NCBI GenBank assembly: GCA_943704425.1
Contig: CALSCP010001339.1
Location: 1 to 33,624 of the forward strand
DNA length: 33,624 bases
Origin: Ministeria vibrans ATCC 50519
Lineage: Eukaryota; Protista; Filasterea
Direction: 5' to 3'
Part shown: one piece after another, positions 336-33,624 of the stretch
Position numbering within the stretch: the stretch's first letter is position 1
Layout: the number at the start of each line of letters is the position of its first letter
Notes under the pieces: model-generated
What the model saw: the letters and a program-made list of their open reading frames with translations, nothing else
Told to the model about the DNA's origin: nothing
The model's database searches: none
Position numbers and translations under genes: made by a program

Positions 336-3331
336 CTTGAGAATGTCAATTGGAAGAGGATTCTCCCACCAACGATTGATCCGCACACCGCTCTAAATTG
401 ACAATATAAATTCTCATCACTCACATAAAATCATTTTCGTTAGTTACGTCAGCTTCTGAGTTATCCGAGGGACTGTCGTGTTGATCGAGTTTGGAAAAAG
501 CAGAATCGCGAGACTTATCACTGTTGCAACGTTGCGTGATGGAAGGAGGAGCCTCTCGAGCAATGGGACGCGCAACGCGGATCACACGTTCAATGTCAAC
601 ATCCTATGTGAGTGTGTGTGTGTGTGTGTGATGAAATGAAAGAGAGAGAGAGAGGAGGGGAAAGAAACAGATGAGGAGAAAGAAACAATGTGATAGAAAA
701 AAAGTGGAACACAAAGTGATACAGAAACAAAACAAAGTGATACAAAACAAAGTGATACAAAACAAAACAAAGTGATACAGAAACAAAACAAAGTGATACA
801 GAAACAAAACAAAGTGATACAGAAACAAAACAAAGTGATAATGAAACAAAGTGAAACAACAACATGACACACGACTTACAGGCATATCGGAGAAGTGCAA
901 AATACACTCATTGAACGAAAAGGAGAGCAAAAGCGAACGAAACTGCAAAAGAATTGCAATGCCAATACACATCGGAAGAGACACAGAGCCCAAGAGAATC
1001 GTATCCCATAAATAGTAAATCTTATCCAAAGGGAAAACGTCTATCAAAAGAAAGGGGGTTGAATTCAGTCAGAGTTTGATCAAAAACGTATTCGTTACGA
1101 GTGAAGAGAGTGAGAAACCAAGAAATGGCATAGAGCTCAGCGTGAAAGCCCACATTTAGCAAATGCTGAGCAAGTTCTGGATCGTGAAACGCAATAAGAT
1201 GCGAAAAGACTGCGAGATATTCCTGAATGACAAGTGAGTTGTCTGCTGCAAAAATGCCATTAAGGTATTTGTGGATGAATGCGTTGAGAGAGGCCCAGGC
1301 GAGTGCTTCGTCGTTGAAGGAGAGGGTTACAAAGGGCGCAGCAAGGGAGTCAAGGCCTGATAGAAAATGAGAATGAAGTATAAGTAGTGTGGTCTTCTTT
1401 TCTTTTCGAGTGAATGTGAGTGTGTGACAGAGAACGACAGGCACACACACACATATATATATAATATACGCCCTCCTTTTTGTGTGAGTGTGGTGTGTTT
1501 GGCACACACTTCATTGTTGGGCGTGGCAGTGAATGGCATGCACTTGACTATGATGGTGTCTCTAACCTTGCCAGTAGACCAGGGCTGGGTTTGCAGCAAC
1601 CCATGCCTTGAGGACACGCTTCATGATGGCATGGCCGGTCGGGGACGATAGAAGTGTGTGGTACTGATGGCAGCGTGGGATGTCCACCTCAATCTGCCGG
1701 TCGGTCGCCGTCGCGGTGTCCTTGTCGACGGCGGCGTAGTCTGCGCGGTAGTCACCGTGAACGCCCAGCACAGCGGCCCATGCACGACCGCGAAAAAAGG
1801 GTGGGATGTCGACGGCACCGTTGCTCACGATAGCGTCGCGCGTGGATGGGTATGCCTGGAGCATCTGACGAAACAAGTCAATGCGGCCGTACTGGTACTC
1901 GACGTCGTCTTCGCGGATGCTCAGGGGCAAGGTGACCGCGTCCGCTGCGTTGGTACCGTCGGTGACAGCGCGGCCGATGCGCTCGATAAGCCGGGTCAGC
2001 GGGAGCACCACCACCATGTCCGTGTACATGCTGACCCGGTCGCGTGCCTCTTCCACGCGACGTCCTGTTGTCACGCAGTGCAGCGAAGGAAACCGCAGAA
2101 TTGGCGGTCGCACCTGAATGAGATTGTGTTGCGTGAGAAGAGCGACCAGATCGCCTCCGGCCCGACACCACAAAAAGTACAGCTCGTCGAGAGGCAGTGC
2201 TGCAACTTCATTGGTGCCCGCTGGAACCGTTATCGCTGCTTCTGCTGCGGCCGCTTCCGCTTCTGCTGCCCTCTCTGCAGCACCGGCCTTCTTCTCTGTG
2301 CTCCCATCGGTTGAGCCTAAGGCACCGCTGCTGTCAGCAACGCCTGGCGACGACTTGCTGACCCACGGCGCCACTTTGAGCGTTGCTTTGGTGCGTTGCG
2401 ACACAAACAACATTGAGGCTCGCGTGCACGGGCGTGGCATCCACTGGCCGAGCATGACAGGCTGCGGATCGGCGCTGGCATCAGCTGTGGTCGACGCGAC
2501 CAGTGAGCCAAGAAGCGGTTCGAGATAGGGGTGTGACAAGAGCTGGTCGGCCGTGAGACGAGCGCGCGGATCAACAGCAAGGCAGCCACGCAAAAAGTCG
2601 ACCAGGTCTGCATCGAGGGTCGCGACGTCCTGGGCCCGGTGCTCGGCCAGAATCTTGTCGAGGACGCAGCCGGTGGACAGAGCACCCGACGCAATGGCCA
2701 TGGTCTTCCTGAGCAGCGCTGCAAGGTCGTCGCGCAGATGCGCCCACACCTGCCGCCCCATGAGCAGCTCAACAAGCACAATACCAAGGGCCCACGAGTC
2801 GACCTTGCAGCTGCACGGCCCGCGCAGGCCCGCGTCGGCGTCGTCGCTGCTGGCGATGAGTTCGGGCGCCAGAAAGCGCGCGTCTCCAATGAGAAAGGGG
2901 ACGGCGCGGCCCATGTCGCTCATCGAGAAGAGCCCCCAGTCGCTGAGCTTGACGTGGAGCCCCGCACCGTCGGCACCGGCGGTCGCCATCAGCAGAATGT
3001 TGTGCGTCGAAAGATTGCGATGGACAACCTGTCGCGCATGAAGGTGCTGCAGCGCCGAGCAGACCTGCAAGGCAACGCGACGCACGTCGAGCGAGCCCCG
3101 CACGTCGGCGGCGGTCCGTTCGGCGTGCTCCTGGACGACCAGCAGCCGATCGTGGGCGCTGCGACGCAGATCAATGTATCGCGCCAAATGGACATGGCCA
3201 AACGCATTGGCGTCCGCCAAACGAGGAAACGCCCCTGCAATGCACACGCTCTTGGGCGTGACTGGGAGGCCGTTGGATCCGCACAGATCGCTCGATTGAG
3301 CGACCGCGACGAATGTTCGAACGCCAAGCAT
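336..3331 (-). CDS. TBCK: TBC domain-containing protein kinase-like protein (pseudokinase + TBC RabGAP); 3' end, expected to include the rhodanese domain, lies beyond the window start
   Basis: Exons spliced by eye with GT-AG in frame: 3331-1567, 1356-1099, 1040-880, 603-448, 392-336. N-terminus [14 protein letters not shown] matches TBCK (DVCGSNGLPLTPNS). Degenerate kinase motifs [10 protein letters not shown] and KLSDWG. TBC fingers IEVDIPRC and YWQG|LDSLAAPF, then WFLTLFT|[13 protein letters not shown]. Confidence 0.95.
711..855. repeat. Intronic tandem minisatellite, about 21-bp unit (ACAAAGTGATACAGAAACAAA) with shorter variants
   Basis: About seven to eight copies of CAAAGTGATA visible in TBCK intron 604-879; these produce the repetitive spurious ORFs at 582-907. 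Confidence 0.9.
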
Positions 3332-4061
3332 TGCAATGATCAATAATATTATTATTATTATTATTCTATTTTGGAATTTGGATGGATGAATAAAAATATC
3401 TGTGTGAGGGTGCGCGCCCGTCCGCCCGCGAGACAGATCACAGATAGACAGACATTGTCAGACAGCCAGGCAGGCAGGCAGGCAGGCAGCAGGGGGGAAT
3501 GATGAGGCGAGATAGAATGAGTGTGTGTAGAAATGGATATTTTCAATCAGACTGACAGCTAAATGACATCGCTTCACCATGGCTCTGTAATCTGTTAATT
3601 GAACAACCGAATCGCTTGCTCGGCAGCCTGTCGCTCCTGCCACGTCTCAAACAACCTTACATATCAAAAGTTTCAAAACTCACATTTGTTTACTTTTGAA
3701 TAACAGAACAAGTCATCAATCAGTCTCTCTTCCCACATTCCGTCCTGTAAAGGAGATCGTTGGCACGTGGCGCAAATGATGGATGACGACGTAAGCGCGC
3801 GGAACACATCTTTTTTCTATCTGCGGATTTCATATCATTTTGACATATTTTATGAGAGATAAAAAACGCCGGTCGGCTCGTTCTCGCCACAGCGGCTTTC
3901 TTTCGCCTTGTTGCTTTCCGTATGGGTGGCCCATGTCTATTCACACGTCTGGAAGGCGCCAAAACGTCACGATGTGGCTGTATTGCTCTGCTTTTCGCTC
4001 ACCAGCGAATTCTGCCCATTTTTTTTTCAAAAATCACTGACTGAAACTTTCTATACTTCCA

Positions 4062-6735
4062 ATGGACTCACTCGCTATCGTATGGCGGCAGATAAACGGC
4101 AGACACGGCAGAGAAGTGGTTCAAGCGCACGGTGGGGGCGGCAGCGACGACACCGAGGACGAGAGCGCGGCAGACGGGCCGGACGATGTGGTTGCGCTCG
4201 ACAGCGACGACGATCTGCTCGTGAGCGACGAAGACCGCGATGCGCCCATCACCCGCCGCCGCTTCCACTCCCACTGGCGCCGCTCCGCCGCCTTTAGGCA
4301 TTCCTGGCGCCAGAAGAAGCTCTCTGCGAGCAAACGAGGTTAACATGTTTCAAAAAAAAAAAAAAAAAAAAAAAAAAACGCCTGTGGTGTTGTTAACTCA
4401 CTCAATGTGGACTGACTGACACTTTGCGACTTTTTTTTTTTTTTTTTTTTTTTTTTGCAACGTAGATGGCACTCTGTTCTGTGCGGACGATGAGACGTTG
4501 CTGGCGACGTTGGAGCCATTGGTATCGCTGCATCACTACGCCAACGTTGAGGTAGCAGGGCTCCCTGCAATGCCACGCCTACAGGTACCATGGGACACGG
4601 TTGCCAGTCAGGTGCACGAGTGGACGGCGTCGGAGCTCAAGCGTCGCTGGCGCTACCTGCGCATGCTTGTGGCAGGTCCCACTCTTCTTGTTCAACTACA
4701 GTCGCTGTGCAAGTTGTTCAGCGACGCCAAGCGCAGTGGTTCTCTGGAGACATGCGAACGTGTGCGCACTCGGATGCGCCGTCAACTCCCTCAGCCTACA
4801 GCCAACAAGACGCATCAGCGACCTTCACCACCAACAACAACAACACCACCACCAACAACACCATCTTCATCATCATCATCATTGTTATTTTCAACAACTA
4901 CAAGAACAGCGAGAGCGACTACATCTGTCGGGTCGCGGCCCAACCAACCGCTCGTTGTGGGTCAGCATTGGACGGCGTTCAGACTGTACTTCAAGGAGCA
5001 GTGGCTGCGCGAGCACCCGCATCACGGACTGAGTGAGGCCGTTGCTCAGGTGCACGCACGTCGCGACTGGCAACAGCAACTGACGGCAGAGGAGCGCCGA
5101 GCGTATGCAGACAATGCCCAGGTACAGCAGGAGTACGGGCGAGTGTTTCAACGGGAGTTTGAAGGGATCGTCGAGCCGCAAGCGCGTCCAAAGGCGTCGA
5201 GTGGTGTTGCACTATGGACAACTCTGTCGCCTGAAGAGTATCGTCGTCACCGACCGCACGCGCATGTATTTGAAGAGGAACACCGACTGCGACTGGAAGA
5301 GCAAGGGCACCGCATGCGCATGGAGCGACTGGATGCGCGACGGGAGGAGGTGGCGGCCGCGGAGAAGGCGATGAAGCTGGTGCAGCGGCAGCGACGACAA
5401 CTGACGGGCGGCAAGCCAACGCGTGCTCCAACGGGCTACCAGTTGTTTCTGCAGCGGCAGCGAAAGCGCGACGAAGAAGGGAAATTTGCGCCGAGTGGGG
5501 GGTTTATGGCGCAGAGGGCAACAGAGTGGAAGGCACTGACGCGCGAGACACGGGCGGAGTACACGCGCGAATCAAACGAGCTAAGTTGCGTGTACGAGCG
5601 GGAGATGGAGGAGTACTGGGGAGTGTACGGACGGCTGTTTCCGGACGATGCGGCGTATGCACTGGCGCAAAGGAGTGTACAGACGCGCAGAGGGACCAAA
5701 AAGCGCAAGAAGGAGAATGCAGGGGAGGAGGAGAAGGAAGGAGGAACGAGTGGCGAGGATAGGGAGCCAAAGCGACCGAGACAACAAACAGATGTGCCAA
5801 ACATTGGGAGTGGGAGCGGGGAATGTCCGTTTGCTGGCGACTATGCATTTCGAATGTTCTGTCGCGCGCGACAAGATCAAGTGCGAGCTGAGCTGCGCCA
5901 CTCAAGAGTGTACAATGGTGATGATGGCGAGGAAGGTGGTGATGGTGGGAGTGAGGATGAGGCTGTGTCGCAGGCACTGGTAGGTGCGTGGGGGGTTCTG
6001 TCGAGCAGCGAGCGGCGTGCCTTGGAGCATATTGCGGAGCGACTGCGCGCTGATTGGGAGAAAGAGAGGGCCACTGCTGCTGCGACCACCACAGCGACCA
6101 CAAAAGCAACCACACGAGCAAGCACAAGAGCAATTGTGCCAGCAGCAGGAACAAAAGCGAGCACAACTAGGACACACTCGCCGCCACCGTCTTCGATGGT
6201 CACTGTGGCAGTTGCTGAGCTGTCTGCGTCAACGAACGTGCCTGAGTCATTGCTGTTTGGCGACGAGTCACTGTTGCCACCGAACTACTTGCTTAACGAG
6301 CACGAATTGGACGCTTGTAGTGGCGCAGAAATGCTGCTGGGAGGACCCGCTGTGTTGTCATTGAGGGCACTTGCCGGTAGCACGGATGTGTCGGAGGAAG
6401 AGGAAGAGGAAGAGGAGGAAGAGGAGGAAGAGGAGGAGGAGGAAGAAGAGGAGGTGCCATTTCTTGAAGGAGCCGTTGACGATGTACTGAGTGAGCTGCA
6501 AGACACGCTGACGAGTCTGTGTGAGAACAGCGGCGACTATGCGACTGCGCGTGCTGTCTTCAAGCAGTTTGCAGAGCGAATGCGCGAGCACGTTGTGTTC
6601 CATTATCCCGCGATCAAAGCGGGTGCTCTCTCACGACTGGTTCGTCAATTGTGGCTCAAGGTGCCGCTCATTCAACGACGCCACTTGGGGGTGCTTCTTA
6701 AGCGACGTCGAAAGAGTTTGGGCGATTGTGTGTAA
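4062..6735 (+). CDS. Multi-HMG-box nuclear protein (about 850 aa) with N-terminal Myb/SANT-like segment and poly-Glu tract; UBF-like architecture
   Basis: Exons 4062-4338 and 4466-6735 join in frame across a GT-AG intron. Four HMG-box-like segments: WTAFRLYFKEQ..WQQQLTAEERRAY; KPTRAPTGYQLFLQRQR..EWKALTRETRAEY; YAFRMFCRARQ..AWGVLSSSERRAL; VFKQFAERMRE..LVRQLWLKVP. SANT-like VPWDTVASQVHEWTASELKRRWRYL. Basic NLS-like KKRKK. Confidence 0.8.
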
Positions 6736-7027
6736 ATAAATTCGTTTCATTTTTTTTTGTTTTCGAATTGGAGTGCACAACTATTTTAATGAGTAAGCTG
6801 AAAATTCTCTTGAATCTCTTTGTACTCAAATGAGAAGAAGTGTTGTTTGACCCTGATTAATAATAATAATTTTAATTAAAATTATAAATAATAATATTAT
6901 GTTAATAATGTTTTGGCTCAAGATATCGAAACTTGAATGTCCCTTGTGAGTAAGTTCTCGAATTTTTTTGCTTCAGAGTCTACTATGTTCATTCGCAGTT
7001 AGTGTCTGTCGTGACAGTCTGTCTCGC

Positions 7028-7098
7028 GCTGTGTTGGCGTCGATCTGGAAGACTGTGTGCAGTGGTGTGCAATGTTGTTTGAGGGAAAGAGTGAGAGT
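7028..7098 (+). pseudogene. Degenerate fragment of the 3' part of the zinc-finger repeat gene
   Basis: CTGTGTTGGCGTCGATCTGGAAGACTGTGTGCAGT..GTGCAATG..GAGGGAAAGAGTGAGAGT aligns with about 8516-8595 (CTGTGTTGGCGTCGACCTGGAAGAGTGTGTACAGT..GTGCAATG..GAGGGAAAGAGTGAGAGT) with substitutions and a deletion. Confidence 0.75.
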
Positions 7099-7286
7099 AA
7101 ATATTGAATGAACAATAAGTGCACAAGATAAATAAGATTTAGGCTGGCACTCCGAGGAGCCGATTTATTTGGTAAGAAAGTGCTAACTGTTAAGCGAGCG
7201 CCTTGCTTGAAAATTGAAAGGTGGGCAACACAATAATATTTTCAAAAGGTGAACTGTTGATACTTGATTATAGTCTTTTTCAATTG

Positions 7287-8676
7287 ATGAGCGAACCGTG
7301 GGATCGCGTCGCGGTCGCCGCTGGTCGTGCGTATGCGTACAACATGGAGCTGATGATGTCGGAGACGGGCGAACGATGCCGGACGGATCCGCCAAGTGAG
7401 ATTGGCGCTTGTTTTGCATTGGGCGCCAACGGAAAGATTGTGTGTCGCTTTCCTACAGCCGATGGAGAGCCATGTCGGTCACAGGGGTTTGTGGGCGAGG
7501 GTGTGCGGAAACACTTTACCTTGCACCATCCCATGAGCAAGCACCGCGTTGTCTGTGTCGTCTGCAATTCGTATGTTGGTTCAAGTCACCTCAAACGTCA
7601 CGTTGCTTCACACCACAGCAACACATTCACAGCCACCGTCATGGAACGCAGTCCGTTGGAGGACGGAGGGATGGAAGACGGTCTACCTGCGGGAGGTGCG
7701 TGCGGCATTGGAGCGCGACGGAGAAGAGGAGGACGTTGAGGGAGAAGTGGCGAAGGTGTTTGATCGTGGCGAGTTCGAGCGAGTCCCAATGGGATTTGTG
7801 ACTTGGTTGGCGATGGCACGAGGCGAGAAGGAGGATGAGGAAGACACGAGTGTGTTTGAGATGCTGGGGAATGGCAAGGTGCGGTGTCGGTGTCGACTTG
7901 TGAACGGACGAGTGTGTGCTGGACTGGGATTTGCGCCTGAGGGGGTGGGGCATCATTTCTCAAACTCCCATCCTCGGAGTGTGTTTCGCGTCAACTGTGT
8001 GGTGTGCAAGGAGGATGCGGCGCCACACGGAAGCACATTGAAGCGCCACCTGCTGCAATCGCACAGTGATGTATTCACTCGTGGCTGTGACTGGCTGAGA
8101 GTGTACGCTTCACTTGTGCGCAGTGAGCTGGAGGAGCGCAATGCGAGTGAGGCTGTGATTGTGCGTGAGCTGCAGCTGTTGCATGAGAGCGAGCGAGTGC
8201 CGTCGTCATTCTCTGGTTGGTTGTCGCGTGCGCAGAAGGAGAAGGAAGTGGGGAGTGGGTGCGGTGCGGTGGATCTCGACGCGTCGTTTGAGCGACTGGC
8301 CAATGGTCGGTTCAAGTGTCGAATGGTGCGACCGGCGACGGGACAGGTGTGTGATACTGCACTATTCACAAAGAGGAATGTGAGTGGTCATTTTGGCATT
8401 TATCATGTGCTAAGTGTGTATCGCACTCGATGTGCCATCTGCTCGCAATCCGTGTCCGAGGCGAGCAATCTGCGCAGACATCTGCGCGGCCGTCACTCTG
8501 CGTTGTTCACTCCCACTGTGTTGGCGTCGACCTGGAAGAGTGTGTACAGTTGTAATGTACGTAGTGCAATGATGCGAGAGGGAAAGAGTGAGAGTGCGAT
8601 TGAGAGAGAACTGAGCATTTTGTATGAGCATGAGAAAGTGCCTGCCTTGTTTAAAAGGTGGGCGATACAGTATTAA
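7287..8676 (+). pseudogene. Triple-repeat C2H2/BED-like zinc-finger gene, copy A, with a +1 frameshift near 7668-7670 (pseudogene or sequencing error)
   Basis: ORFs 7221-7739 and 7549-8676 together encode three homologous units. Copy A reads GGAGGGATGG where copy B reads GGAGGATG; removing one G fuses the frames (LEDGGWKTVY). Confidence 0.75.
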
Positions 8677-9118
8677 TTCATTATTTTTGTTTCCTCATTG
8701 GCGTATTGCCGGATTCTTAAAAAGTTCATCAGATCCAGTGTGATAGTGTCATTGGCGGTTTCAATTTACTCCGGTGATATTGAACAAGTTAGCGAATACG
8801 AAAAATATTTTTTAAAGAATGGAGAGTTGTACTGAATGTCGAAACAAGACATAAAAACCAAAGAGCTATTATTAACCATTAAGTCCCGTTTGTAGTATTA
8901 TTGAAAAAGAAGAATAACATTTCCAATATATTATCAATCACATGACAACACAATATTAATATTAATAATCATCATCGAGAATATGAGAAAATAATAATAA
9001 TAATAATTATTTAATGACGTAAAGAATAATAATAATTCATAATAATTATTATTTTTTTTTCTCAAGTTGTAGTCTTCTGTGTGCATCGAGCCACCGAAAG
9101 CCCAAGGAATCCGTTGTA

Positions 9119-13809: not shown

Positions 13810-16800
13810 CTGTTCGAGCTGATGGCGGAGAAGTTGACCCCGAATCGGCACCTGTCGTTGTTGACGACGTTGTGGGCGAGCGTGAGGGCACGGATGCGAC
13901 TGTTGTCGACAAGTACGAAATCACTAAGCTGATGTGACACTTTTAATGTTTTAATATAATTATTTTTATTGTGGTTTATATAGGGAAGATGAGCGAATCA
14001 AGCTCGACGGATTATCGGGTGCCGAGGTGAAGCTGTTGCGCGACCAGGCTGAGAAGTTTGAATTTCAGGCGAGCAATCAGCGTCTGATGCAGTTGATCAT
14101 CAACTCGCTGTACAAGGTATTGATCATATTATCATGTCTTACATGTCTGATCTCACATTCTCTCCCTCCATCACTCTGTCTCTCTGTGTCTTTTCTCTCT
14201 CTCTTTTGTCTCTTTGTTTTTTTTTTTGTAGAACAAAGAAATTTTCCTGCGTGAATTGGTGTCGAACGCCAGCGATGCGATTGACAAGATCCGTATGATG
14301 TCGCTGACCAACCCAGAACTGGCGGGTACGCTGGGCGAGCTTGGCATCAAGGTCAAGGCAGACAAGGACGCCAACGTGCTGCACATCATCGACACGGGCG
14401 TGGGCATGACCAAGAAGGAGCTTGAGGCGAACCTGGGTACGATTGCCAAGTCAGGCACTAGCGAGTTCCTCGATAAGCTTCAAGGATCATCAAGCGAGGT
14501 ACAACCCCAAGAACAACAAAAGAAATACGTTTGTAAACTTTGCTGTTTCATTCGTGTGATAGGACGCATCAAACCTCATTGGACAATTTGGTGTTGGGTT
14601 CTACTCGGCGTTCCTTGTTGCCGACACAGTTGTGGTTACGACCAAGAGCAACGACGACGACAAGCAGTACATTTGGGAGAGCGACGCTCACTCGTTCACC
14701 ATTGTTGAGGATCCTCGCGGAAACACTCTTGCGCGCGGAACGCAGGTGAGTCACTTTAATCAACTTATAAATAAATGAATAATAATTATAATAATAATTA
14801 TTATTATTATTTATTGTGTATACGTGTGACTGATTTGCGTGTGTGTGTGTGTTTGTGTTGTGTAGATTTCTCTGTTCTTGAAGCCGGAGGCAAAGGAGTT
14901 CCTTGAGCAGACCAAGATTGAGGAGCTGTTGCACAAGTACTCTGAGTTCATTCAGTACCCGCTTGCGGTGTGGTCGTCGACGACGGAGACGGTCGAGGAG
15001 CCCATTGAGGAGGATCTGACGGCCGAGGAGACCGAGAAGAAGGCGGACGAGAACGACGAGGAGGCCAAGGTGGAGGAGGAGCAGGAGGACAGCAAGCCCA
15101 AGACCAAGTCGGTCGAGAAGACCACCTGGGACTACAAGGTTGTCAACGAAAACAAGCCCATCTGGACCCGCTCGCCCAAGGACGTCACCGACGACGAGTA
15201 CAACCGCTTTTACAAGGACTTCACCAAGGACACAAACGTAAGCGATCACGTGTTCTGTCTCTCTGTGATTGGTCTCTTTTCTGTCTTGATGTATGACTGT
15301 GATTGTTTTCTTTTACACTTTATTATTATTTTCTTTTTGCCGTGTTCGTACTCTCTCTCTACCTCTCTCCCTCCTGTCTCACTGTCACGTTTTTTTTCTT
15401 CTCACTTTAGGACCCCATTGCTCGCACTCACTTCTCTGCTGAGGGTGAGATTACCTTCCGTGCCATTCTGTACATTCCGGCCGAAGCGCAGTCGGAGCAT
15501 CTCCAGAACTTCTACAAGAAGACCAAGAACGTCAAGATGTACGTGCGACGCGTGTTTATCACCGATGACTTTGAGGATATGCTTCCCAAGTACCTTAACT
15601 TCATTGTGGGTCTTGTTGATTCCGATGATCTTCCTCTCAACGTTTCACGCGAGACCCTCCAGCAGAACAAGCTTCTCAAGGTACATCGTCTGTGTGTATG
15701 TATATATATGTGTGTATGTGTGTATGTATGTATGCATGTATGTGTGTGTATGTATGTATGTGTGTGTGTGTGTGTATATGTATGTCGGACTGTGTGTCAG
15801 TCCATGCCTGTCTTTATTTCTGCTCTGTTTGTGTATCTCTTGTCTTTGACTCACCCTCTGATTCTTGTCATCCGTAGGTTATCCAAAAGAAGCTGGTTCG
15901 CAAGGCGATTGAGATGTTGAAGAATCTGGCAACCAACGACAGCGAAACGTACGACAAGATCTACAAAGAGTTCAGCGTGCACATCAAGATGGGTACGATT
16001 GAGGACCAGGCCAACAAGTCGCGTCTGAGCAAGCTGCTGCGGTTTGCCACGAGCAACGATTCTGAGAAGATGACGTCGCTTGCGGAATATGTCGAGCGCA
16101 TGAAGGACAAGCAGGTATCACTTGCCATCCACTCTCTTCACTCAACTCGTGTTATGTTCACTCTATTGTTCACTTTCTTTTCGCTCTTACTGGCCCACTC
16201 ACTTTTGTTTTATACTGTTGCGTCTTTTGCAGGACAAGATTTACTACATGGCTGGCCCAACACGCGAGGAGGTCGAGGCGTCGCCGTTTGTCGAGCGTCT
16301 CCTCAAGAAGGGCTATGAGGTGCTGTACCTGGTGGACCCCATTGACGAGTACCTGATGCAGAGCCTGACTGAGTTTGAGAGCAAGGGCTTCCAGTCGGTG
16401 GCCAAGGAGGGACTCACGTTTGGCGATGAGACGGAGGCGCACAAGGAGCTGGCAAAGCAGCAGGAGGAGAAGTACCAGCCGCTGCTGGACTGGCTCAAGG
16501 AGACGCTTGGCGAGTACATCTCCAAGGCGACCGTGTCGAACCGTCTGGCCGAGTCGCCCTGTGCGCTTGTCGCTCCGTCGTTTGGCATTTCGGGCAACAT
16601 GGAGCGCATCATGAACAGCCAGGCGATGGGCAACAAGAAGGATCCCATGTCGTCGTTCTACAAGACGCAGAAGAAGACGCTCGAACTCAACCCGGGCCAC
16701 CCACTCGTCGCAAAGCTGCTCGAGCGCATCGCGGACGGCGGCGAGGACGCCAAGACGGACGAGAGCAACAAGGACCTGGCGCTCGTGCTGTACGACACGG

Positions 16801-17048
16801 CTGTGCTGCGCGCCGGCTTTGCTCTGCGCGACTCGGCGCAGTTTGCCGGTCGCATTGAGCGCATGTTGCGCATTTCTGTTGGCGTCGATGTCAACGCGCC
16901 CGTCGAGGAGATGCCCGAGCCCGAGGTGACCGACGACGGCGATGAGGAAGACGACGACGATGCCGAGGAGGAGGACGATGCTGAGGAGGACGATGATGTC
17001 GTCGAGGACGCCTCTGAGTCCGACGAGCCTGTCCATGAGGACCTGTAA
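13810..17048 (+). CDS. HSP90B1: Endoplasmin / GRP94 (ER HSP90); signal-peptide exon upstream of 13810 not resolved
   Basis: Multi-exon: [10 protein letters not shown]..; [15 protein letters not shown]|[21 protein letters not shown]; [18 protein letters not shown]; [17 protein letters not shown]; [37 protein letters not shown]; acidic tail ending HEDL (ER-retention type). Confidence 0.97.
15690..15785. repeat. Mixed (GT)n/(GTAT)n intronic microsatellite
   Basis: Directly visible within a GRP94 intron. Confidence 0.9.
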
Positions 17049-23922: not shown

Positions 23923-25267
23923 GCGAATCGGGGCATGTTGATGAAATGCGAACTTTCCTCTAAAGTGAAAGGAAAGTGAAAGTTACAAATGTGTTTTTTT
24001 TCACTCTTTCCAATCCACACACACACACTGAGTCACTGAGCGCACAGACGGTCCGCCGACAAACGACTGCAAACATTTAGAACCCCAATCGCCCTCGCAC
24101 GTCCACACCGGGACTGCACGCCAGGCCTCTCGACCAGGCTGCAGTAGGGGAAAGGAAAGAAAAAACGAACAAAAAGCGAACAAAAGAGAATTCCAATGCT
24201 CATAATTAAGCTTTTCGTTGGTTCCAAACCCCAAAGGCTTCACTCCACAGCCCCACACTGATACACGTAACAAAATGTTGAAAGGGCGGGGGACAGAGAC
24301 ACCGCTTCAGAGGGTTTCAGCTCGCAGGAAAAAAACGAAGAAGAAAAAAACGAATTCATTTGCACACTTTTTCGCATTCTCCTGTCTCTCTCACGCTCAC
24401 AAACCCGCCTAGGTGCCTGCCTACCTTCAGTGAGACAGTGAAGGACACTGTCAAGGAAGAGAGGGGTGAAAATGAGTAGTCACGAATCCGCACTCGCGGT
24501 CTCTCTCATTCGTAAAAATACTCAGCCATTACTAGGAAACCCACAAAGCTTTATTCTTCAATTTTCACGACTTTTTTCTTTCTCACAATGTCTAAAGCAC
24601 CCTGCGCGGCCCCTATCTGGTCTATCACACACTGTTTGCTCACTAAGCACAGCGCGGCAGAAGGCGTAAGCGAAGCGTAAGCAGCATGGGGATGGGGGAG
24701 ATCCGCGCCCTCCGCACCCCCTGTTTTTGGTAACATGGGAGAACAGTGGCAGGTCAGAGTGCTGTATCGTCGCTATTCAGGGAGGCAATTGCAATGGTAC
24801 GCCATACCCCAAGTAGGGGCTTAGGGCTCTGACACCATGAAGGTGTCTGTCGGCAAGGAGTGTAAAGTCAAAGTTCAGTCAAAGTCGTGGTTGAAGCAAT
24901 CGGATCGGTGGTCGGCGGCGGCTGCGGGGCGCTCCCGTGGTACGCATGCGAGGCGGGTCGGCTGCAGGGCGGCTGGTGTGCTTGCTGTGTGTTAGATTAT
25001 GAGGATAAGGATATGGTGGGTAAACGTAGGAAAAAGGGGGTGTTCGGGGTGAATCACCGGGTGGCGTTGACGGCGGCGATGAAACATTTGTACATCTCCC
25101 CCAGGGAATGAATTAATCGAATGCACAAAAAAGACCCAATAATGATAAAAGAATTGTTATTACAAACGAAGATATTTTACTCCCCGAATCAAAGACACCA
25201 AGATGAATCATAAAAAAATAAAAAAATATTATTATATTATTTACATTCAATCAATCAGCCCTTGTCG

Positions 25268-28200
25268 CTATGGCGCTCCAGATCCGTTTCTAAAGAAGAA
25301 GATGTCACCCTCGTTGGTCATTTCGTTGGTCCAATCATTCCAAATGCGCGCCACCAACATGGCTTGGAATGTGTTTTCCCTGTCCAGTTCCGTCAGACAA
25401 CGCCGCAGCTGAACCGCCGTAATGCACTGCTGTCCGTCAGGAAACGCACGCAGTTCAGAACCCAGCGCGAGCAGGAGAAGCTCGGTCATGCGCGTCATGC
25501 GGCCGTCACCCACATAAGCCCTGGCGTCCCTGAGCGAGCTCGTCATAATCTGGCGCGCATAGAGACCCTCTCGTCGCTGGGGAACGGGCGCGCTCTGCTC
25601 GGGTTGCAATTGTGTCAAATCTCTTCCCGCGTCAATCAATGCACCGCTGTTGCAGAAGTCGCTAAACACCATCACATTGCCACCCGGCCAGAACACGGTG
25701 TCACGCAGAATTGTCGAGAGATCATTGAGGGCAAATCGCGTCAAGCGACCTTCAACCGCCGTCGTCTCTGCGTCACTGAGCAACAGACCGCCGAGACGGT
25801 CGCTCGCGCCGTGTCCAATTAAATGGACAATCAGCAGCGAGTCCTGTCCAATGATTCGTCTCCGCGAAAGATCAAGCAGGCCCGAAACGATGTCCTGGCG
25901 CACCACTTGAGGTGTCTTCTTCGTTTCTGTCACAGACCTCACTTGACAGCCTCGCTCTCTCCACAACTGCCTGAGATGGCGCACACTTCCTCTCGCACCC
26001 GGCAGATCATTGTAGGGTTTGAGGGCGGGGTTGCCAGTGGAGCGATAGCGACTCACACAAACAATCAGCACAGAGACGTTTGCGTAGACGTCAGGGACTG
26101 GGTAGAAGGAAAAACGGGATTATTGGTTCTATTCAAATAATATTATTTAGAATTCATACCTTCAGGCTTCACCCACCATCGAGACAAAGAGATATTGCAC
26201 TGCAGTTGCGTGTTTTCAGGTACACGGCTAAGTTTTTCCTGAACTGTGTTTCTCTCACGGAATGGCTCGCAATTGAGCGCAACATGTTCGGGCGGGAACA
26301 AGGGACGGGCTGCACTGCCTTCCGGCTGGTGCGGGTGAGCGGGCACCGCCACGAACTTGCCTCGCCAGCCCCATCGTTGAGTGTTTGTTGACTCGCACAA
26401 TGTCTTCAGCGTGGCTAAAGTCATCTCACACTTGCGCGATTCGTCGCTCAGCAGCTCCACTCGAATGAACGACTCGCCATGTTTGAGTCGCAGTCGCATT
26501 GGCGCACAACCATTCATTGTGAGCATGTTTGTGCAACGCTGTGTTGCATCAATCGGACTGCCAGGCAGACACTTGCGCCACAGCGCGACCATGACCAAGT
26601 GAAACGTAGCAAGTGGCACTGGAAGCTCCTCCCAGCCATCCACAATTTTGCTCATCTGGTAGACGAACAGAACGGCGAGTTCGGCAGGCGCAGCCGGTCC
26701 AACGGCCGGCGTCTCAGGCAGCAGCATAGGCGCCAAGAGTCGCTGGTCGTGCACATACACCAAGCTGAGGCGCTCAAGCGATTGCATGAGCACAGGCACG
26801 TCGTCCACACGTGCACCGGCAAGCAGGGGATCGTTACTGCTGTTGGTGCTGGCCGCTGTCCAGACAAGCCACTCGGCCACCTCGCGCGGGATGCCTTTGT
26901 CGGCGCGGGTTCGGGAGTTGTCCAGAGCTTTGAGTAGTCGCTCGGTGCGCGGCAGATCGATCGCATTGCCAGCCTCAATGACCTTGGCCAACATGTTCCT
27001 TGCGCGCTCGCTTTCCACTTGTTCCCATCGTGCCATCACGACCGAGCACAACAGCTCGACGACCGCGATGAGGCGCGGAACGTCAAGCACGATTGTGTCT
27101 GTCCGTTTCACTTTGCGCGACAGCGAGTTCTCACGGCACACCAGGATGTCAGCTGCGTCCTCGAGATACCACAAGAGCTTTGTAGACACTTCGGCACTGT
27201 CCGGCATCAGATCAGACACCCGGATCTCTGGCTCACTGCTGAGCTTGAGCGAGTGGAATCCCGCCACGGTGGAGACCAAAGGTATCTCACCCAGTCGTGC
27301 AGCTCGACCAAGCAGGTCTTGCACACAAACGTATTCCAGTGGCACCGCACGTAATTGTCTGACACCAGCGTCATGGAGAGCCTGCGAGAGGGCACGAAGG
27401 CCGATCCGCTTGACGCTGCCCACCTGGAAGAAGGGCACCAATGTGGGGGCCGGCCCGGCCGGGAGCATCATGTGATCGCCCAGCTGGACTCCAACAAGAC
27501 GGCGCACATTGTTGGAAACTTCCTCAAGCAGAGCAGGCGGCACAGTGTCGTCGGGGAACCTGTCAAGGTGAGTTCCGACAACAATCACGTGAAAGGAATC
27601 GTCCTCGTTGGAAGAAAGATTTTGATGCGCGATGGCGTGGGCCCACTTGGCCAGGTAGGCGTACTGACGCTGAGCTTGGTCGGGATCGTGCATGACGGAC
27701 AGATCAAAGACANNNNATCGTCCTCGTTGGAAGAAAGATTTTGATGCGCGATGGCGTGGGCCCACTTGGCCAGGTAGGCGTACTGACGCTGAGCTTGGTC
27801 GGGATCGTGCATGACGGACAGATCAAAGACAAGCAAGTAGGCGGACTTGGAGCCCACAAAGAGGGAAGAAAGTGAGTCGAACGGCTCGTGACCTAATTGA
27901 AATGTATAAAAGAACGCGTGTAAGGTGAGTGGATATTGGGTTTGCGGGGTATAAGCACTTACCGGCACAGTCGATTGTTTCAATGTCAGTGCACCCGTGA
28001 CGCAAATCAGACTTGAGAGCCCTGCGCACAGCGTCCATGACGTTTGAGATGGGCGGAGAGTCGGACGTCATCGAATTGATGGTTGTAGTTGTGGCTGAGC
28101 GTGAGCGTGAAGGTGTCGATGGCTCTTGTGGTTCAGGCTGCTTATGAGAGAAAGAGCGCAAAAAAAATCGAAACCGACTGCAAATTGTCAAAGGGGGGGG

Positions 28201-30472
28201 CCTTGGGGCGCTGGCTGGGCCTGGGGCCAATGATGGCGGATAGCGCGCGCGGAATGGAGTGGTTGTTTCTGACAGGTGCTGATCTGCGGTTGGATTCTCT
28301 GCCCGCGCTCCAATGAGACTGGCGACACGGTACTCGTTCTGCGGCACGGTCTCAAACCTGCTTGCTTCAACCTCAGTTGCAATCATCCGCACTCGTTGCG
28401 GGCGACTTAACCCCAAGCTATCGCTGTCGCATGGCAGTGTCTCTTCACGCACAGCAAAAAGCAGAGCCGACTTGCCCGCCCCGGGCGCGCCTAGACAGGG
28501 CGTTTTGATCATACGCGACACCAAACCACAAGCAATGTATTTGACTGCCCGCTGAAAGGCAGAATTGTACGTGCTGCAAGAAAATGAAGAAAAAACAAAA
28601 AATAATAATAACAATTAATACTATTTCGGCCAGCAGCTGCTATTGGTACTCACTTGAACAGTGGCCAGAAATAGGTTCTTCCTACGCATTCTGCAATAAT
28701 TGTTTCCCCGTTTTGCGAGAAACTGACTGAGGTAACGCTAAAGAGGAGTGGACGAGAGAGACAAAAAGGTATGAGTGTTGCAATGAGAAAATAATTAATT
28801 CCACCTGCTCGATTGTGTAAATTGTTCGCGGATAAATCCTTTGGCTCTCGACCAAACTTTGATTGTCCAGTCTTTAGAGGCGCTGTAAATGATTTTCCCG
28901 TCCTGAGAGAGTGCCACCGAGCGCACACCACTAAAAGTGAGTTTATTTTAAAAAGAGTTGAGCAAAAAAGTATTTTAAAATTCATTCTTTGGAACCAGTA
29001 CTACCTATTGTGTTCGCTAAAGGTCTGCTCGCACGTTCCTGTTTCAACTTTCCACACTTTGACTGTCGTGTCTTCCGATCCGCTGACAACATGGAGGCCG
29101 TCGGGGGTAAACAGAGCTGCATGAACAGTTCTAAGAGCAATTGTTTTGTCAAAGAGGGCTTGGGTTTGTGTCATTGTTTGAGGGAGACTTACTCTGTGTG
29201 CCCGCTCAGGGTCGCCTCAATAGATCGTTTCTCAAGGGACCAGATTTTAATTGTTTTTGTTTTAAACACAGTCAGAATGCGCAGACCGTCAGGTGAGTAG
29301 GCGACACATCGAACAGCCCTAGGGAGGAGGGGGGTTATAAGGTATAAGTTTCCATTATTATGATGATAGGTATTTCGTTGAAATCATGTGGCTATTTTGT
29401 ACCCGCCGTTAGGTCCGTTGCAAAATGTGTGCAAGCACTTTCCTGTTTTGCTGTCCCACAATTTCGCTGTGCTGTCGTGTGAGCCAGATAAAATTGTAAA
29501 TCCGTCAGGGGAAAATTTTGCCGCAAGGACTCCTCTACCAAGGTCAAATTGGGGATAAATACAATACTAATCATTGGTGGTTTCTCTTGGAAACATTGAA
29601 ATAGTCAATGATACCCAGTGTGTCCCTGAAGAACGTGCAGAGGCGCACCCGTTTGACTGTCCCACACACGAACAGTTTTGTCAAAGCCTCCGCTGACGAG
29701 CTTGTCCTCATTCGGGGAGAAATCAACACAAAAGACAGTTCTAAAATAGATAGCAAATCGTAAGTGAGAAAAGAGGAAGAAAGAAACAAATCAAAGTCAT
29801 AGAGAGAAGGAGAAAAAAAACGAATTGGAGTGATAGAGAGAGAGAGGGAGGAGGGAGAAAAAAACAAATCAAAGTAAGAGAAAGAGGGAGAAAAAAAAAA
29901 CAAAATAGAGAGAGGAGGAAGAAAGAAACAAATAGATGGAGAAGGGAGAAAGAAACAAAGAAGGGGTATATAAAGATAGAGTATGTGTGTGTGGGTGGGG
30001 GGTCAACTGATGGTTTTTTTTCCTGTACTGTTCGTGTCCGAAAAGGGTAAGTTTGCACGTTTCACTGCGGCAATCCCACACTTTGACTGTCATGTCTCCA
30101 GAGCCAGTGGCGACCGTATGGCCATCGGGGGATACGCACACGCACATAATTGCACTACACCACAGCATGAGAGTGACTCTTGCCAAAAACCCGCCTCTTT
30201 CTTTCTTACTTGGTGTGTCCTTTCAGGGTCTTCAAAGACGTCTGACAAGATGGCGACCAAATCTTGACAGTTTGGTCGTTCGACACGCTTGCAAACCACT
30301 CGTCGTTTGGACTCACGGCGACGTCTGTCATCTGCGCCGAGTGCTCTTTAAGCGTCTCCAAGGAACAAATGATGGATTGGTCTCCGTCTGAGTCCTCCTC
30401 GAACAGAAACACTTGCCATCCGTGAGTGTATACTTTGAAGGCAGGATCAATCGGATTAGTTGCAGAACGCAT
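25268..30472 (-). CDS. WD40-ROC-COR-caspase-like (peptidase C14) ROCO protein, copy 1, about 1,387 aa, 11 exons
   Basis: Exons 30472-30210, 30154-30029, 29740-29615, 29534-29403, 29318-29193, 29130-29005, 28930-28805, 28737-28654, 28573-27963, 27892-26160 (minus a 119-nt gap artefact) and 26097-25268 total 4164 nt in one frame. WD40 repeats (GH..V..V.FSPDG..L.SGS.D.TVKVWD). P-loop GAPGAGKS (28468-28491). G3 DCAG|HEPF..F....AYLLVFDLS; G4 VIVVGTHLD. COR-like LWYLEDAADIL..TIVLDVPRL and LAPMLLPE. Protease motifs LIVHLIGHG and VFSDFCNSG. Confidence 0.85.
27598..27831. other. Assembly artefact: 115-bp direct duplication flanking a 4-N gap
   Basis: 27598-27712 is repeated at 27717-27831; collapsing one copy and the Ns restores the ROC reading frame. 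Confidence 0.9.
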
Positions 30473-32064
30473 TCTTCTACAAAAAATTTAATTGTGTAAA
30501 AACAGCGGTCGGTACTTTCAAAAGTACAATGGAAATATCATGGAATAAAATAAGAAAAATAAATAGAGAATCGAGAGCTGTCAATGAGCTCGAAAGCGAG
30601 AGCTCGGGAATGCGGAATGTTTAGGTTTGCGGTATGATTCTGTGATAACAGTAGTTAAAAGGGCAATCTACTAACTATCTCACCCTCTCGTCGACGTAAA
30701 TGTAAAAGTTACATCCTTAACACACCGTATCCCTGCACAGACAGCGCAAGTGCGCTTCATTTCTTGTTTTTTTTTCTTCTCAAAAGCAGCTTTTTTTTTT
30801 CTATTCTTTTTCTCCGCGTGACTGCGCTCTCTTGCTGAAACCGTTGACTCAATGGCCTCAACGCTTCGCACCGTACACCCACACAGTTGTACCGACCCGA
30901 TGACGCATGGTACGGGTATTTTTTTTTCCAATTAATTGATTGGCGAAAGTTCAGCGAAAACTCAAGCGAGATCGTTATCTCTCTGCGGTCGACACTGTCG
31001 ATTTTTTTTTTCGTGAATTTTTTTTTTTTCGTGATGCATGACTGACGTCCGTGCCGCCTTAAACGACGGCTGTAAGGTTTCAAAGCGATTATATGATACA
31101 CACAGGATCGTTGGCCAGTCGACATGCGTCAGAAAGAGACGGAGTATTCCGTGGGTGAACGGTAAAAGAAGATTTCCCCTGGGGAAATATTTAGAGAGCC
31201 GATTGAGAGCTCGTGGAGAGACTCCCTTCGGTGTATCGTACCGCAGAGTTGAGAAGCAAGAGTACTCAAAGGCAGTAGGAAGTGCGGAGTACGATACACT
31301 CCTTACGACAGTGTAGGGAGTAGAAAAAATACTGAGTGTCGACTGTCGTCTGTCAACTTGATCAGCAGTTAGTTCAAGTTATGAGCCGATCACCACCGCA
31401 GAACCACTGTATCCTTGTTTCTATTTAACTACTGCCAACCGGGCATCACCACCATTGCAAAACAGCGACACTTGAGAGCGTCAAATTGAGCTGCTTTGAC
31501 AACAACACACTGTTGGCTAGAGTCCCTTTGGAGGACCACTGCTGCTTCTCCAACGCGCATCTGCCGACTTCAGCAACTTCCTTGTCTCTTCTGTATGCTG
31601 TGTGTACTGTGTAGGGAAGCAGGGGTAGCGTCGAGCTGTATGTGTGTGTGTGTGAAAGAATGCTGAAGTTCTGTTATTGTTCTGTTGTTTTTCGTTTCAC
31701 ACACAGACAGACACACACACACAAACAGAACACTGCTTCGACGGCGAATCACGCAGACACACGGTGAACAGCCAAAAGTCGGGTCGGGTGTCACCGTGTC
31801 GGTACATCCTCCTTAAGACGCGGAGGAGCGTCAGAGGGAAGTGTCCTGGCAAATGGCTCGCCAATGCGAGGGCTGTGGTTGTTGTTGCTGTTGATTTATA
31901 CGTCGGAAGTTGATACGAGCCTCATTTGCTGTGGCTTTATACGCGTTGCTGTTGGCCTCAATGGCCTGTTGCTGCTGTGCCTGCGGGAAGGCTGTGCATT
32001 GGAACGTGTCGCTCGACGTCGCATTGTCGTGGATTGTTGAAGGCTCATCTCATAATGAAAAAAG

Positions 32065-32343: not shown

Positions 32344-33624
32344 TTATACACTATTATACATTCCACATCCGTTCCTAAAGAAGAAGATGTCACCCTCGTT
32401 GGTCATGTCGTTGGTCCAATCATTCCAAATGCGCGCCACCAACATGGCTTGGAATGTGTTTTCCCTGTCCAGTTCCGTCAGACAACGCCGCAGCTGAACC
32501 GCCGTAATGCACTGCTGTCCGTCAGGAAACGCACGTAGTTCATCGGTACCCAGTGCGAGCAAAAGTAGCTTGGTCATGCGCGTCAGGCGGCAGTCAACCG
32601 TGACATAAGCGCTCGCGTCCCTGAGCGAGCTCGTCATAATCTGGCGCGCATAGAGACCCTCTCGTCGCTGGGGAACGGGCGCGCTCTGCTCGGGTTGCAA
32701 TTGTGTCAAATCTCTTCCCGCGTCAATCAATGCACCGCTGTTGCAGAAGTCGCTAAACACCATCACATTGCCACCCGGCCAGAACACGGTCTCACGCAGA
32801 ATTGTCGAGAGATCACCTAGGGTAAATCGCGTCAAGCGACCTTCAACCGCCGTCGTCTCTGCGTCACTGAGCAACAAACCGCCGAGACGGTCGCTCGCGC
32901 CGTGTCCAATTAAATGGACAATCAGCAGCGAGTCCTGTCCAATGGTTCGTCTCCGCGAGAGATCAAGCAGGCCCGAAACGATGTCCTTGCGCACCACTTG
33001 AGGTGTCTTCTTCGTTTCTGTCACAGACCTCACTTGACAGCCTCGCTCTCTCCACAACTGCCCGAGATGGTGCTCACTTTCTCTCACACCCGGCAGATCA
33101 TCGTAGGGTTTGAGGGCGGGGTTGTTAGTGGAGCGATAGTGACTCACACAAACAATCAGCACAGAGACGTTTGCGTAGACACCAGGGACGATTGGCTGTC
33201 CTGCAAAGGATAGAGGAGGGAAACAATGAGTATTTTGGGTAGAATTACGTACAAGAGAATGAATACCTTGTCGCACCCACCACCGCTCAAAATTAATGTT
33301 GCACTGGCGCGCCACGCCCTGTTGCACGCTAGCGAGCTCGGCCTTAACCACGTTTTCCTCTTGAAGTTGGCGAAGGTTTGAAGCGATGCGACTCGGAAAA
33401 AACAAGGGACGGGCTGCACTGCCTTCCGGCTGGTGCGGGTGAGCGGGCACCGCCACGAACTTGCCTCGCCAGCCCCATCGATGAGTTTCTGTTGACTCGC
33501 ACAATGTCTTCAGCCTGGCTAAAGTCATCTCACACTTGCGCGATTCGTCGCTCAGCAGCTCCACTCGAATGAACGACTCGCCATGTTTGAGTCGCAGTCG
33601 CATTGGCGCACAACCATTCATTGT
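32344..33624 (-). CDS. ROCO-caspase-like protein, copy 2 (3' part only: end of COR + caspase-like domain; 5' part beyond the window end)
   Basis: Close paralogue of 25268-26520. In-frame 66-nt intron 33266-33201 at the same position as in copy 1. His (32902-32904) and Cys (32743-32745) codons of the dyad are intact. Confidence 0.88.
   Translation of the reverse strand, partial: TMNGCAPMRLRLKHGESFIRVELLSDESRKCEMTLARLKTLCESTETHRWGWRGKFVAVPAHPHQPEGSAARPLFFPSRIASNLRQLQEENVVKAELASVQQGVARQCNINFERWWVRQGIHSLVRNSTQNTHCFPPLSFAGQPIVPGVYANVSVLIVCVSHYRSTNNPALKPYDDLPGVRESEHHLGQLWRERGCQVRSVTETKKTPQVVRKDIVSGLLDLSRRRTIGQDSLLIVHLIGHGASDRLGGLLLSDAETTAVEGRLTRFTLGDLSTILRETVFWPGGNVMVFSDFCNSGALIDAGRDLTQLQPEQSAPVPQRREGLYARQIMTSSLRDASAYVTVDCRLTRMTKLLLLALGTDELRAFPDGQQCITAVQLRRCLTELDRENTFQAMLVARIWNDWTNDMTNEGDIFFFRNGCGMYNSV

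Follow-up and report, generated by a model that had tools for sequence, protein, structure and literature searches.

A transcribed gene of Ministeria vibrans predicted to join WD40 repeats, a Roc–COR module and a caspase-fold protease in one chain

The locus and its transcript

The DNA analysed here is a contig of 33,624 nt (CALSCP010001339.1, hereafter the window) from the 29.7-Mb, 2860-contig eukaryotic assembly of the filasterean Ministeria vibrans ATCC 50519 (GCA_943704425.1). Its minus strand carries, between 25268 and 30472, a succession of stop-free pieces in which WD40 repeats, a segment with a P-loop, a long middle part and a caspase-like part can be recognized. A preliminary description of the locus, made from the letters alone, had proposed that splicing unites these pieces into a single ROCO-type polypeptide with a protease as its output domain. 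Here we find that the locus is one transcribed gene encoding a 1387-residue protein, which consists of WD40 repeats, a Roc GTPase domain, COR-A and COR-B, a short linker and a caspase-fold cysteine protease (Table 1).

Splicing was read from contigs of four public sequencing runs (X1, X2, X3 and X8, the first three from one study) placed on window positions 25100-30700. The contigs of X1-X3 skip eleven stretches of this interval, ten of which are introns of 55-288 nt with GT-AG borders on the minus strand. Run X8, a DNA run, covers the same places and contains none of these joints, and we therefore take X1-X3 to be RNA and the joints to be introns. Including a 765-nt first intron, the gene has 11 GT-AG introns in total. 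The two junctions predicted beforehand, 28654/28573 and 26160/26097, are both present in contigs of the three RNA runs and absent from X8, and a single X2 contig of 4309 nt extends from 25248 to 30477 with all introns removed, crossing all four parts before it continues into the 5' exon. This contig, together with the fold matches and with paralogues that hold Roc, COR and caspase in one open frame (see below), bears out the idea of a single spliced WD40-Roc-COR-caspase polypeptide.

Exon pieces were searched individually, and continuity of the reading frame was followed by phase arithmetic: the 12 coding exons sum to 4164 nt, or 1387 codons plus the stop, with zero internal stops. The ATG that begins at 30472 was taken as the translation start because the 5' exon has no ATG in the frame that enters 30472 and an in-frame stop lies at ~31379. 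At the other end of the gene, an X1 contig shows a plus-strand run of T after 25211, which is the poly(A) trace of a minus-strand mRNA. Inverted repeats at 31172-31312 straddle the boundary between the 5' exon and intron 1. The third intron of the transcript (second of the coding region, 29741-30028) is a 288-nt CT-rich low-complexity tract with a different length in X8, pointing to either a length polymorphism or an assembly difference; the remaining introns of the coding region measure 55-84 nt.

The Roc exon contains a run of NNNN and an exact repeat of the adjoining sequence, on which a naive gene call would founder. With a single copy present in the RNA, this stretch is an artefact of scaffold joining and not an intron. 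Such a join inside the gene, and the fact that contigs alone are no proof of a single molecule, could be taken to mean that neighbouring genes have been wrongly joined or that the assembly is chimeric. Yet the three RNA runs cross every junction, one contig spans the four parts, and dozens of other loci repeat the collinear arrangement, some of them in one uninterrupted frame, which makes an artefact of this kind exceedingly improbable. The motif and codon coordinates of the preliminary description, all on the minus strand, proved correct.

Table 1. Coordinates (window positions) of the gene, its predicted domains and motifs, and the adjacent paralogue.
Feature	Position	Strand	Basis
5' exon, probably untranslated (at least 120 nt, contig reach)	31242-31361	-	loose X1-X3 contig ends match 31243-31272; GT donor after 31242
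Intron 1 (765 nt, GT-AG)	30477-31241	-	RNA contig joint
Start codon ATG	30470-30472	-	open reading frame and phase arithmetic
WD40 region	28654-30472	-	Pfam WD40 matches; RNA splice joints; phases
WD40 coding exons	30210-30472, 30029-30154, 29615-29740, 29403-29534, 29193-29318, 29005-29130, 28805-28930, 28654-28737	-	RNA contigs
Roc GTPase domain	27352-28573	-	motifs, paralogue profile, model alignment
G1, GAPGAGKS	28468-28491	-	motif
G3, DCAG, then H	DCAG/H split by 70-nt intron 27893-27962	-	motif
G4, GTHLD (THLD, LRRK2-type variant)	27562-27576	-	motif
G5-like, QVGSVK	27409-27426	-	motif
Assembly artefact in Roc exon (NNNN and 115-nt exact repeat of 27717-27831)	27598-27716	.	X1 and X2 RNA contigs skip exactly these 119 nt
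COR-A-like part (model residues ~121-326)	26734-27351	-	AlphaFold model, Foldseek, VIA-align, ESM Atlas
COR-B-like part (model residues ~327-517) and short linker to donor site 26160	26160-26733	-	model alignment
Intron separating COR from protease exon (62 nt, GT-AG)	26098-26159	-	joint 26097/26160 in X1, X2, X3; absent in X8
Caspase-like (Peptidase C14) domain, one exon	25268-26097	-	Pfam, model, paralogue alignment
Predicted catalytic His codon	25811-25813	-	residue 103 of window:25271-26119:-
Asp two residues N-terminal of Cys (D154)	25658-25660	-	alignment
Predicted catalytic Cys codon	25652-25654	-	residue 156 of window:25271-26119:-
Stop codon	25268-25270	-	phase arithmetic
3' untranslated region to probable poly(A) site	25211-25267	-	X1 contig end at 25211, then T run on plus strand
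Tandem paralogue, 3' end (COR-B tail and caspase-like domain, one 426-codon frame off window end)	32347-33624	-	open reading frame, similarity

The Roc–COR module

Motifs and modelled fold place the gene in the ROCO family. The G1, G3 and G4 motifs by which Roc domains of ROCO proteins are recognized are all present, as the preliminary description had listed, and in alignments of the gene's paralogues the P-loop Lys and both H48 and D50 of THxD are invariant, the Thr of THxD being kept in at least 90%. These alignments were made per domain (A3, A4 and A5), full-length versions (A1 and A2; 1500-1700 columns, 15% column identity) having been dropped. Pfam Roc did not match any of the window pieces, and on paralogues it gave expectation values (E) of 5e-4 to 1.6e-3, under the 27-bit cut-off. 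When the A3 profile, built from the middle pieces of 22 paralogues, was compared with all PDB sequences, only LRRK2 Roc chains were returned, in register from the DxxG of G3 through THxD; the profile of the P-loop half returned generic small-GTPase P-loops only (SAR1, E 0.004; the C. tepidum Roco, CtRoco, E 0.06), a result consistent with Roc and not specific to it. Between switch I and G3 lies a disordered, Ser/Pro/Thr-rich insertion of ~130 residues, which all paralogues carry in variable form.

For the ~400 residues after Roc, termed a COR-like region in the preliminary description, Pfam gives no match, but the predicted fold is that of known Roco structures. We modelled window:26158-27711 with AlphaFold2, using a paralogue alignment as input (model m3ed9d4059d13; predicted local distance difference test, pLDDT, 83.2; predicted template modelling score, pTM, 0.72). 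In a Foldseek search the first 31 PDB matches were all Roco proteins, headed by the RocCOR structure of C. tepidum (3dpu_A, E 9e-8) and continuing with LRRK1, LRRK2 and M. barkeri Roco2. VIA-align likewise placed Roco proteins only in its top 30 rows, with unrelated rows at Z 6.6 or less: 3dpu_B aligned at Z 14.3 across model residues 121-517 (287 residues aligned), the COR-only crystal structure 3dpt_B at Z 13.5, and LRRK1 and LRRK2 at Z ~10, in alignments that take in the Roc part and extend through the whole of COR-B. The first 120 residues of the model correspond to Roc in LRRK2, LRRK1 and CtRoco, and residues 327-514 align to LRRK2 1670-1860 (6vp6_B, Z 7.5). An ESM Atlas feature search independently gave COR-A/Roc clusters. 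Thus it appears from the model that a COR domain, with COR-A and COR-B, lies directly C-terminal of Roc.

The WD40 region

The N-terminal part of the protein is encoded by eight short exons, all but the first of which start in phase 2 (two bases of a split codon being carried in), and five of which are 126 nt long. Seven exon pieces each give one match to Pfam WD40 (PF00400), at E 2e-5 to 2.5e-10, while an eighth, of 27 residues, has no Pfam WD40 match; the 'about 8' repeats of the preliminary description correspond to these seven and the one short piece. To judge by the matches, the tandem repeats would be enough for a closed propeller, of seven blades with a partial eighth piece.

The caspase-like protease domain

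The C-terminal domain just exceeds the cut-off of Pfam Peptidase_C14 (PF00656; E 1.2e-4, 22.3 bits against 21.4). It also matches NCBIfam caspase_w_EACC1 (NF047832) at E 3.9e-9, with 36 bits against a cut-off of 140, suggesting that its closest sequence family is that of bacterial conflict-system caspases of the EACC1-associated type. An AlphaFold model (mdbbfb8b014ee; pLDDT 84.7, pTM 0.88) drew 321 Foldseek matches at E<=1e-3, the top rows being caspases, MALT1, metacaspases and one legumain. VIA-align gave Z 19.2 for the metacaspase AtMC4 (211 residues, root-mean-square deviation 2.9), 18.7 for MALT1 and ~17.5-18 for caspases 6, 9 and 8 (caspase-9, 17.9). The domain is thus predicted, by its modelled structure and His-Cys dyad, to have the C14 caspase-haemoglobinase fold, as the preliminary description had suggested from its motifs.

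The putative catalytic residues, encoded at the positions given beforehand, lie where this fold would have them, H103-G104 after strand 95-101 and C156 after strand 148-154. In a profile alignment to AtMC4, the GHG and D-x-C-x-S-G (DSCHSG) motifs are in register, and D154, which is invariant, aligns with the Asp of DSCHSG. Metacaspases and paracaspases likewise have an Asp two residues before the Cys, an arrangement associated with an acidic S1 pocket and Arg/Lys specificity, and by analogy the protease probably cleaves after Arg or Lys. A non-catalytic scaffold, serving for dimerization or recruitment only, has precedents in c-FLIP, a catalytically dead caspase fold, and in bacterial pseudo-orthocaspases (PMC6426788). 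We consider such a pseudo-protease very improbable here, as neither the His-Gly pair nor the three named residues of D-x-C-x-x-G vary in any of the 20 aligned paralogues, and they align to the catalytic residues of AtMC4.

A large, lineage-restricted family

Within its own genome the protease piece has 61 matches and the Roc-COR piece 66, which suggests at least 35-45 paralogue loci. At all of these loci the P-loop, G3-to-COR and protease pieces are collinear and on one strand. Several paralogues hold their parts in one uninterrupted frame, among them L013:4949-8173, with 1075 codons from P-loop to protease end, L015:765-3455, with 897 codons covering Roc-COR-caspase, and the tandem neighbour in the window. 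At least 12 loci, in a survey of sensor domains limited to a subset of the paralogues, have WD40 exons, at intervals of ~175 nt, immediately preceding the exon with the P-loop, and for this reason we take WD40-Roc-COR-caspase to be the standard form of the family.

One paralogue stands in tandem with the gene and runs off the window end (Table 1), its protease part 92% and its COR tail 74% identical to that of the window gene. Elsewhere in the window, on the plus strand at 14232-17045, lies a gene for an endoplasmic-reticulum-type HSP90 (endoplasmin-like), with a C-terminal HEDL and several short introns.

Two of the loci deserve separate mention. L013 (G000:C2822:44500-53500) has, instead of WD40 exons, a frame with leucine-rich repeats (LRRs; 1-2043) and then one that is Roc-like and contains NB-ARC (2058-4931); these and the Roc-COR-caspase frame (4949-8173) follow one another on one strand, 14-17 nt apart, and canonical short introns that keep the frame are possible, e.g. 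4907-4968. The NB-ARC match (E 1.2e-8) was found only in this frame upstream of the L013 paralogue. On sequence grounds the three frames may belong to a single very large gene in which a Roco switch, a switch of the STAND class (signal transduction ATPases with numerous domains) and a caspase are combined. At L014 (G000:C2643:45500-54500), a frame of at least 789 codons (6633-8999) starts with a divergent caspase-like domain of 28% identity in which the dyad is present; its remaining residues, at least 450, have no Pfam match.

Outside this genome relatives are few. Against 1.84 billion protein representatives the Roc-COR piece matched four short ENA metagenome fragments only, and the protease matched five ENA metagenome fragments. 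Some of these come from a different organism: the Roc-COR relatives on two short ENA metagenome scaffolds (L047 and L048; G+C 54-58%) have 35-39% identity, and a second organism carrying this family thus exists in the environment. Profile scans with the protease found no relative among 185,579 species genomes of bacteria and archaea, in Joint Genome Institute (JGI) metagenomes or in viral contigs; long proteins containing the domain were looked for and none was found, and PADLOC gave no match. The family thus appears to be lineage-restricted.

Relation to known systems

The preliminary description had cited no characterised eukaryotic protein of this architecture, and our full-text literature searches, in which journal coverage was incomplete, brought up no Roco of a eukaryote whose output domain has a caspase fold. 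The broader novelty is reduced by two precedents: Roc-COR-caspase proteins have already been predicted in bacteria (PMC8195603), and Rocos with a protease tail occur in the SAR (stramenopile, alveolate and rhizarian) group (PMC11378527).

In the bacterial proteins, which carry N-terminal LRRs, a caspase is among the effectors found after AP-GTPase(Roc)-COR (Kaur, Iyer, Burroughs and Aravind, 2021; PMC8195603, Fig. 6D), and these are predicted counter-invader systems. They share with the Ministeria gene a repeat sensor, Roc-COR and a caspase-like effector in one chain, the occurrence of several paralogues per genome, and the proposed logic of a nucleotide-switched counter-invader device; the Ministeria protease is itself best scored by NF047832. 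The bacterial proteins, however, are prokaryotic, have an LRR sensor and are known from sequence analysis only, whereas the gene described here is eukaryotic, with 11 spliceosomal introns and poly(A), and has a WD40 sensor.

Group 3 ROCOs of brown algae and other SAR organisms end in a PA-clan, trypsin-like peptidase (IPR009003) and have each LRR on a 72-bp phase-2 exon of its own (PMC11378527); the Ectocarpus LRR-ROCO proteins are candidate receptors (PMC3341825). The parallels lie in a eukaryotic Roc-COR followed by a C-terminal protease, in one repeat per phase-2 exon (126-nt WD40 exons here) and in a proposed role as immune receptors. The peptidase clan and the sensor both differ, the Ministeria protein having a caspase fold and WD40 repeats, and there is no detectable sequence relationship.

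With LRRK2, LRRK1 and the C. tepidum Roco the protein would share a Roc domain of THxD type followed directly by COR-A and COR-B (Z 10-14), and with LRRK-type Rocos an enzymatic output right after COR-B and a WD40 propeller in the protein. LRRK1 and LRRK2 have a kinase output, however, the WD40 domain of LRRK2 is C-terminal and CtRoco has no output domain, whereas here the output is a protease and the WD40 repeats are N-terminal; the ~130-residue insertion between switch I and G3 is a further difference from all three. The protease resembles metacaspases (AtMC4, AtMC9 and Yca1), MALT1 and orthocaspases in a fold that extends over p20-like and p10-like parts (Z 18-19), in the His-Cys dyad and in the Asp two residues before the Cys. 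Unlike metacaspases and MALT1, it comes without zinc-finger or Pro-rich prodomain, death domain, immunoglobulin domains or long p20-p10 linker, and is fused behind a GTPase switch.

In its proposed logic of WD40 sensor, nucleotide switch and proximity-activated caspase-type effector, the protein also recalls the Apaf-1 apoptosome, HET-E, NOD-like receptors (NLRs) and bacterial caspase-NB-ARC-WD40 proteins. Apaf-1, HET-E and NLRs are built on a ring-forming STAND ATPase, whereas the Ministeria protein would use a Ras-like GTPase and a COR dimerizer, with the protease in the same chain and not recruited. Profile searches of the exon pieces gave no match to NACHT or to NB-ARC, and the gene appears by sequence to resemble the STAND/NLR class in logic and not to be a member of it.

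A possible sensor–switch–effector

Initiator caspases and the paracaspase MALT1 are activated by dimerization or induced proximity. The protease of the Ministeria protein begins ~10 residues past the end of COR-B, the part that acts as the dimerizer in the C. tepidum Roco (Gotthardt et al., 2008, cited through PMC7159879), and because the protease starts so close to it, two protease domains could be positioned by a dimer switch. We propose that the single chain would work as sensor, switch and effector: the propeller would bind a trigger or ligand, or impose autoinhibition; the dimer state would be set by Roc, through its nucleotide cycle, and by the interface of COR-B; this switch would bring two protease domains together or hold them apart; and induced proximity would fire the protease, in the manner of MALT1 and the initiator caspases. 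In this scheme guanosine triphosphate (GTP) binding, dimerization, sensing and proteolysis are functions that we infer.

As to the setting in which such a device would act, the size of the family, its tandem copies, the NB-ARC- and LRR-linked relative L013 and the bacterial parallels lead us to lean, with no great confidence, towards a single-chain sensor–switch–effector in cell-autonomous defence, non-self recognition or regulated cell death. More tentatively, and with doubts that outweigh our confidence, the protein could be a GTPase-based analogue of the apoptosome or of NLRs, its dozens of paralogues making up an innate-immune or self/non-self repertoire in this unicellular marine eukaryote.

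Several points weigh against the proposed sensor–switch–effector or make no case for it. The WD40 blades are 45-65% identical to those of paralogues, as against 50-58% for COR and protease; they are not clearly more variable than the rest and do not look like a fast-evolving recognition surface. The tandem pair of protease domains has a ratio of non-synonymous to synonymous substitution rates (dN/dS) of 0.58, which with only 39 differences is uninformative. The sequence matches of the Roc domain are weak, under the cut-off in Pfam and at best E 0.0045 in the PDB profile comparison. Switch I of the window copy (28400-28440) is DSLGLSR, against DRSVATR in most of the other 22 aligned paralogues (with a conservation of at least 90% for each residue), and has Ser in place of its usual Thr; given this deviation from the family consensus, the GTPase cycle of the window copy may be atypical. 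Finally, such known eukaryotic Rocos as LRRK1 and LRRK2 have their role in membrane trafficking and not in defence.

This last point, with the wider place of characterised eukaryotic Rocos in trafficking and signalling, also suits a protein of the same architecture that is a housekeeping or regulatory protease and would serve trafficking, cytoskeletal or developmental signalling through limited proteolysis (cf. MALT1, LRRK2 or separase-like enzymes), with no part in immunity or death. WD40 blades that are not hypervariable would fit such a protease, as would the presence of the gene in all three RNA runs with no known challenge. At least 35-45 paralogues with tandem copies would be unusual for that role, however; one relative lies directly downstream of LRR and NB-ARC frames, and the nearest protease family is that of bacterial conflict-system caspases. 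We therefore think a housekeeping function unlikely, though it deserves to be kept in view.

A different alternative is an allorecognition or selfish-element-linked family, like the HET/NLR incompatibility genes of fungi, in which the protein would be a self/non-self marker between strains and not a pathogen sensor. The design of HET-E, a WD40 sensor with a nucleotide switch and a death effector, is of this kind, and DNA run X8 differs from the window at several sites in the gene. The number of WD40 exon repeats is constant among the paralogues seen, however, and we give this alternative little weight.

Implications

Work on Roco proteins centres on LRRK2, and how Roc-COR controls an output domain is still debated. 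A natural Roco with a protease output would offer peptide cleavage as a simple readout of control by GTP state and COR dimer. If the sensor–switch–effector reading holds, a design known from STAND apoptosomes and NLRs, and predicted in bacterial Roc-COR proteins, also occurs in a eukaryote, where it is expressed, greatly expanded and built on another nucleotide switch. The family thus opens a test of whether caspase-fold proteases of protists may act in receptor-triggered defence or death.

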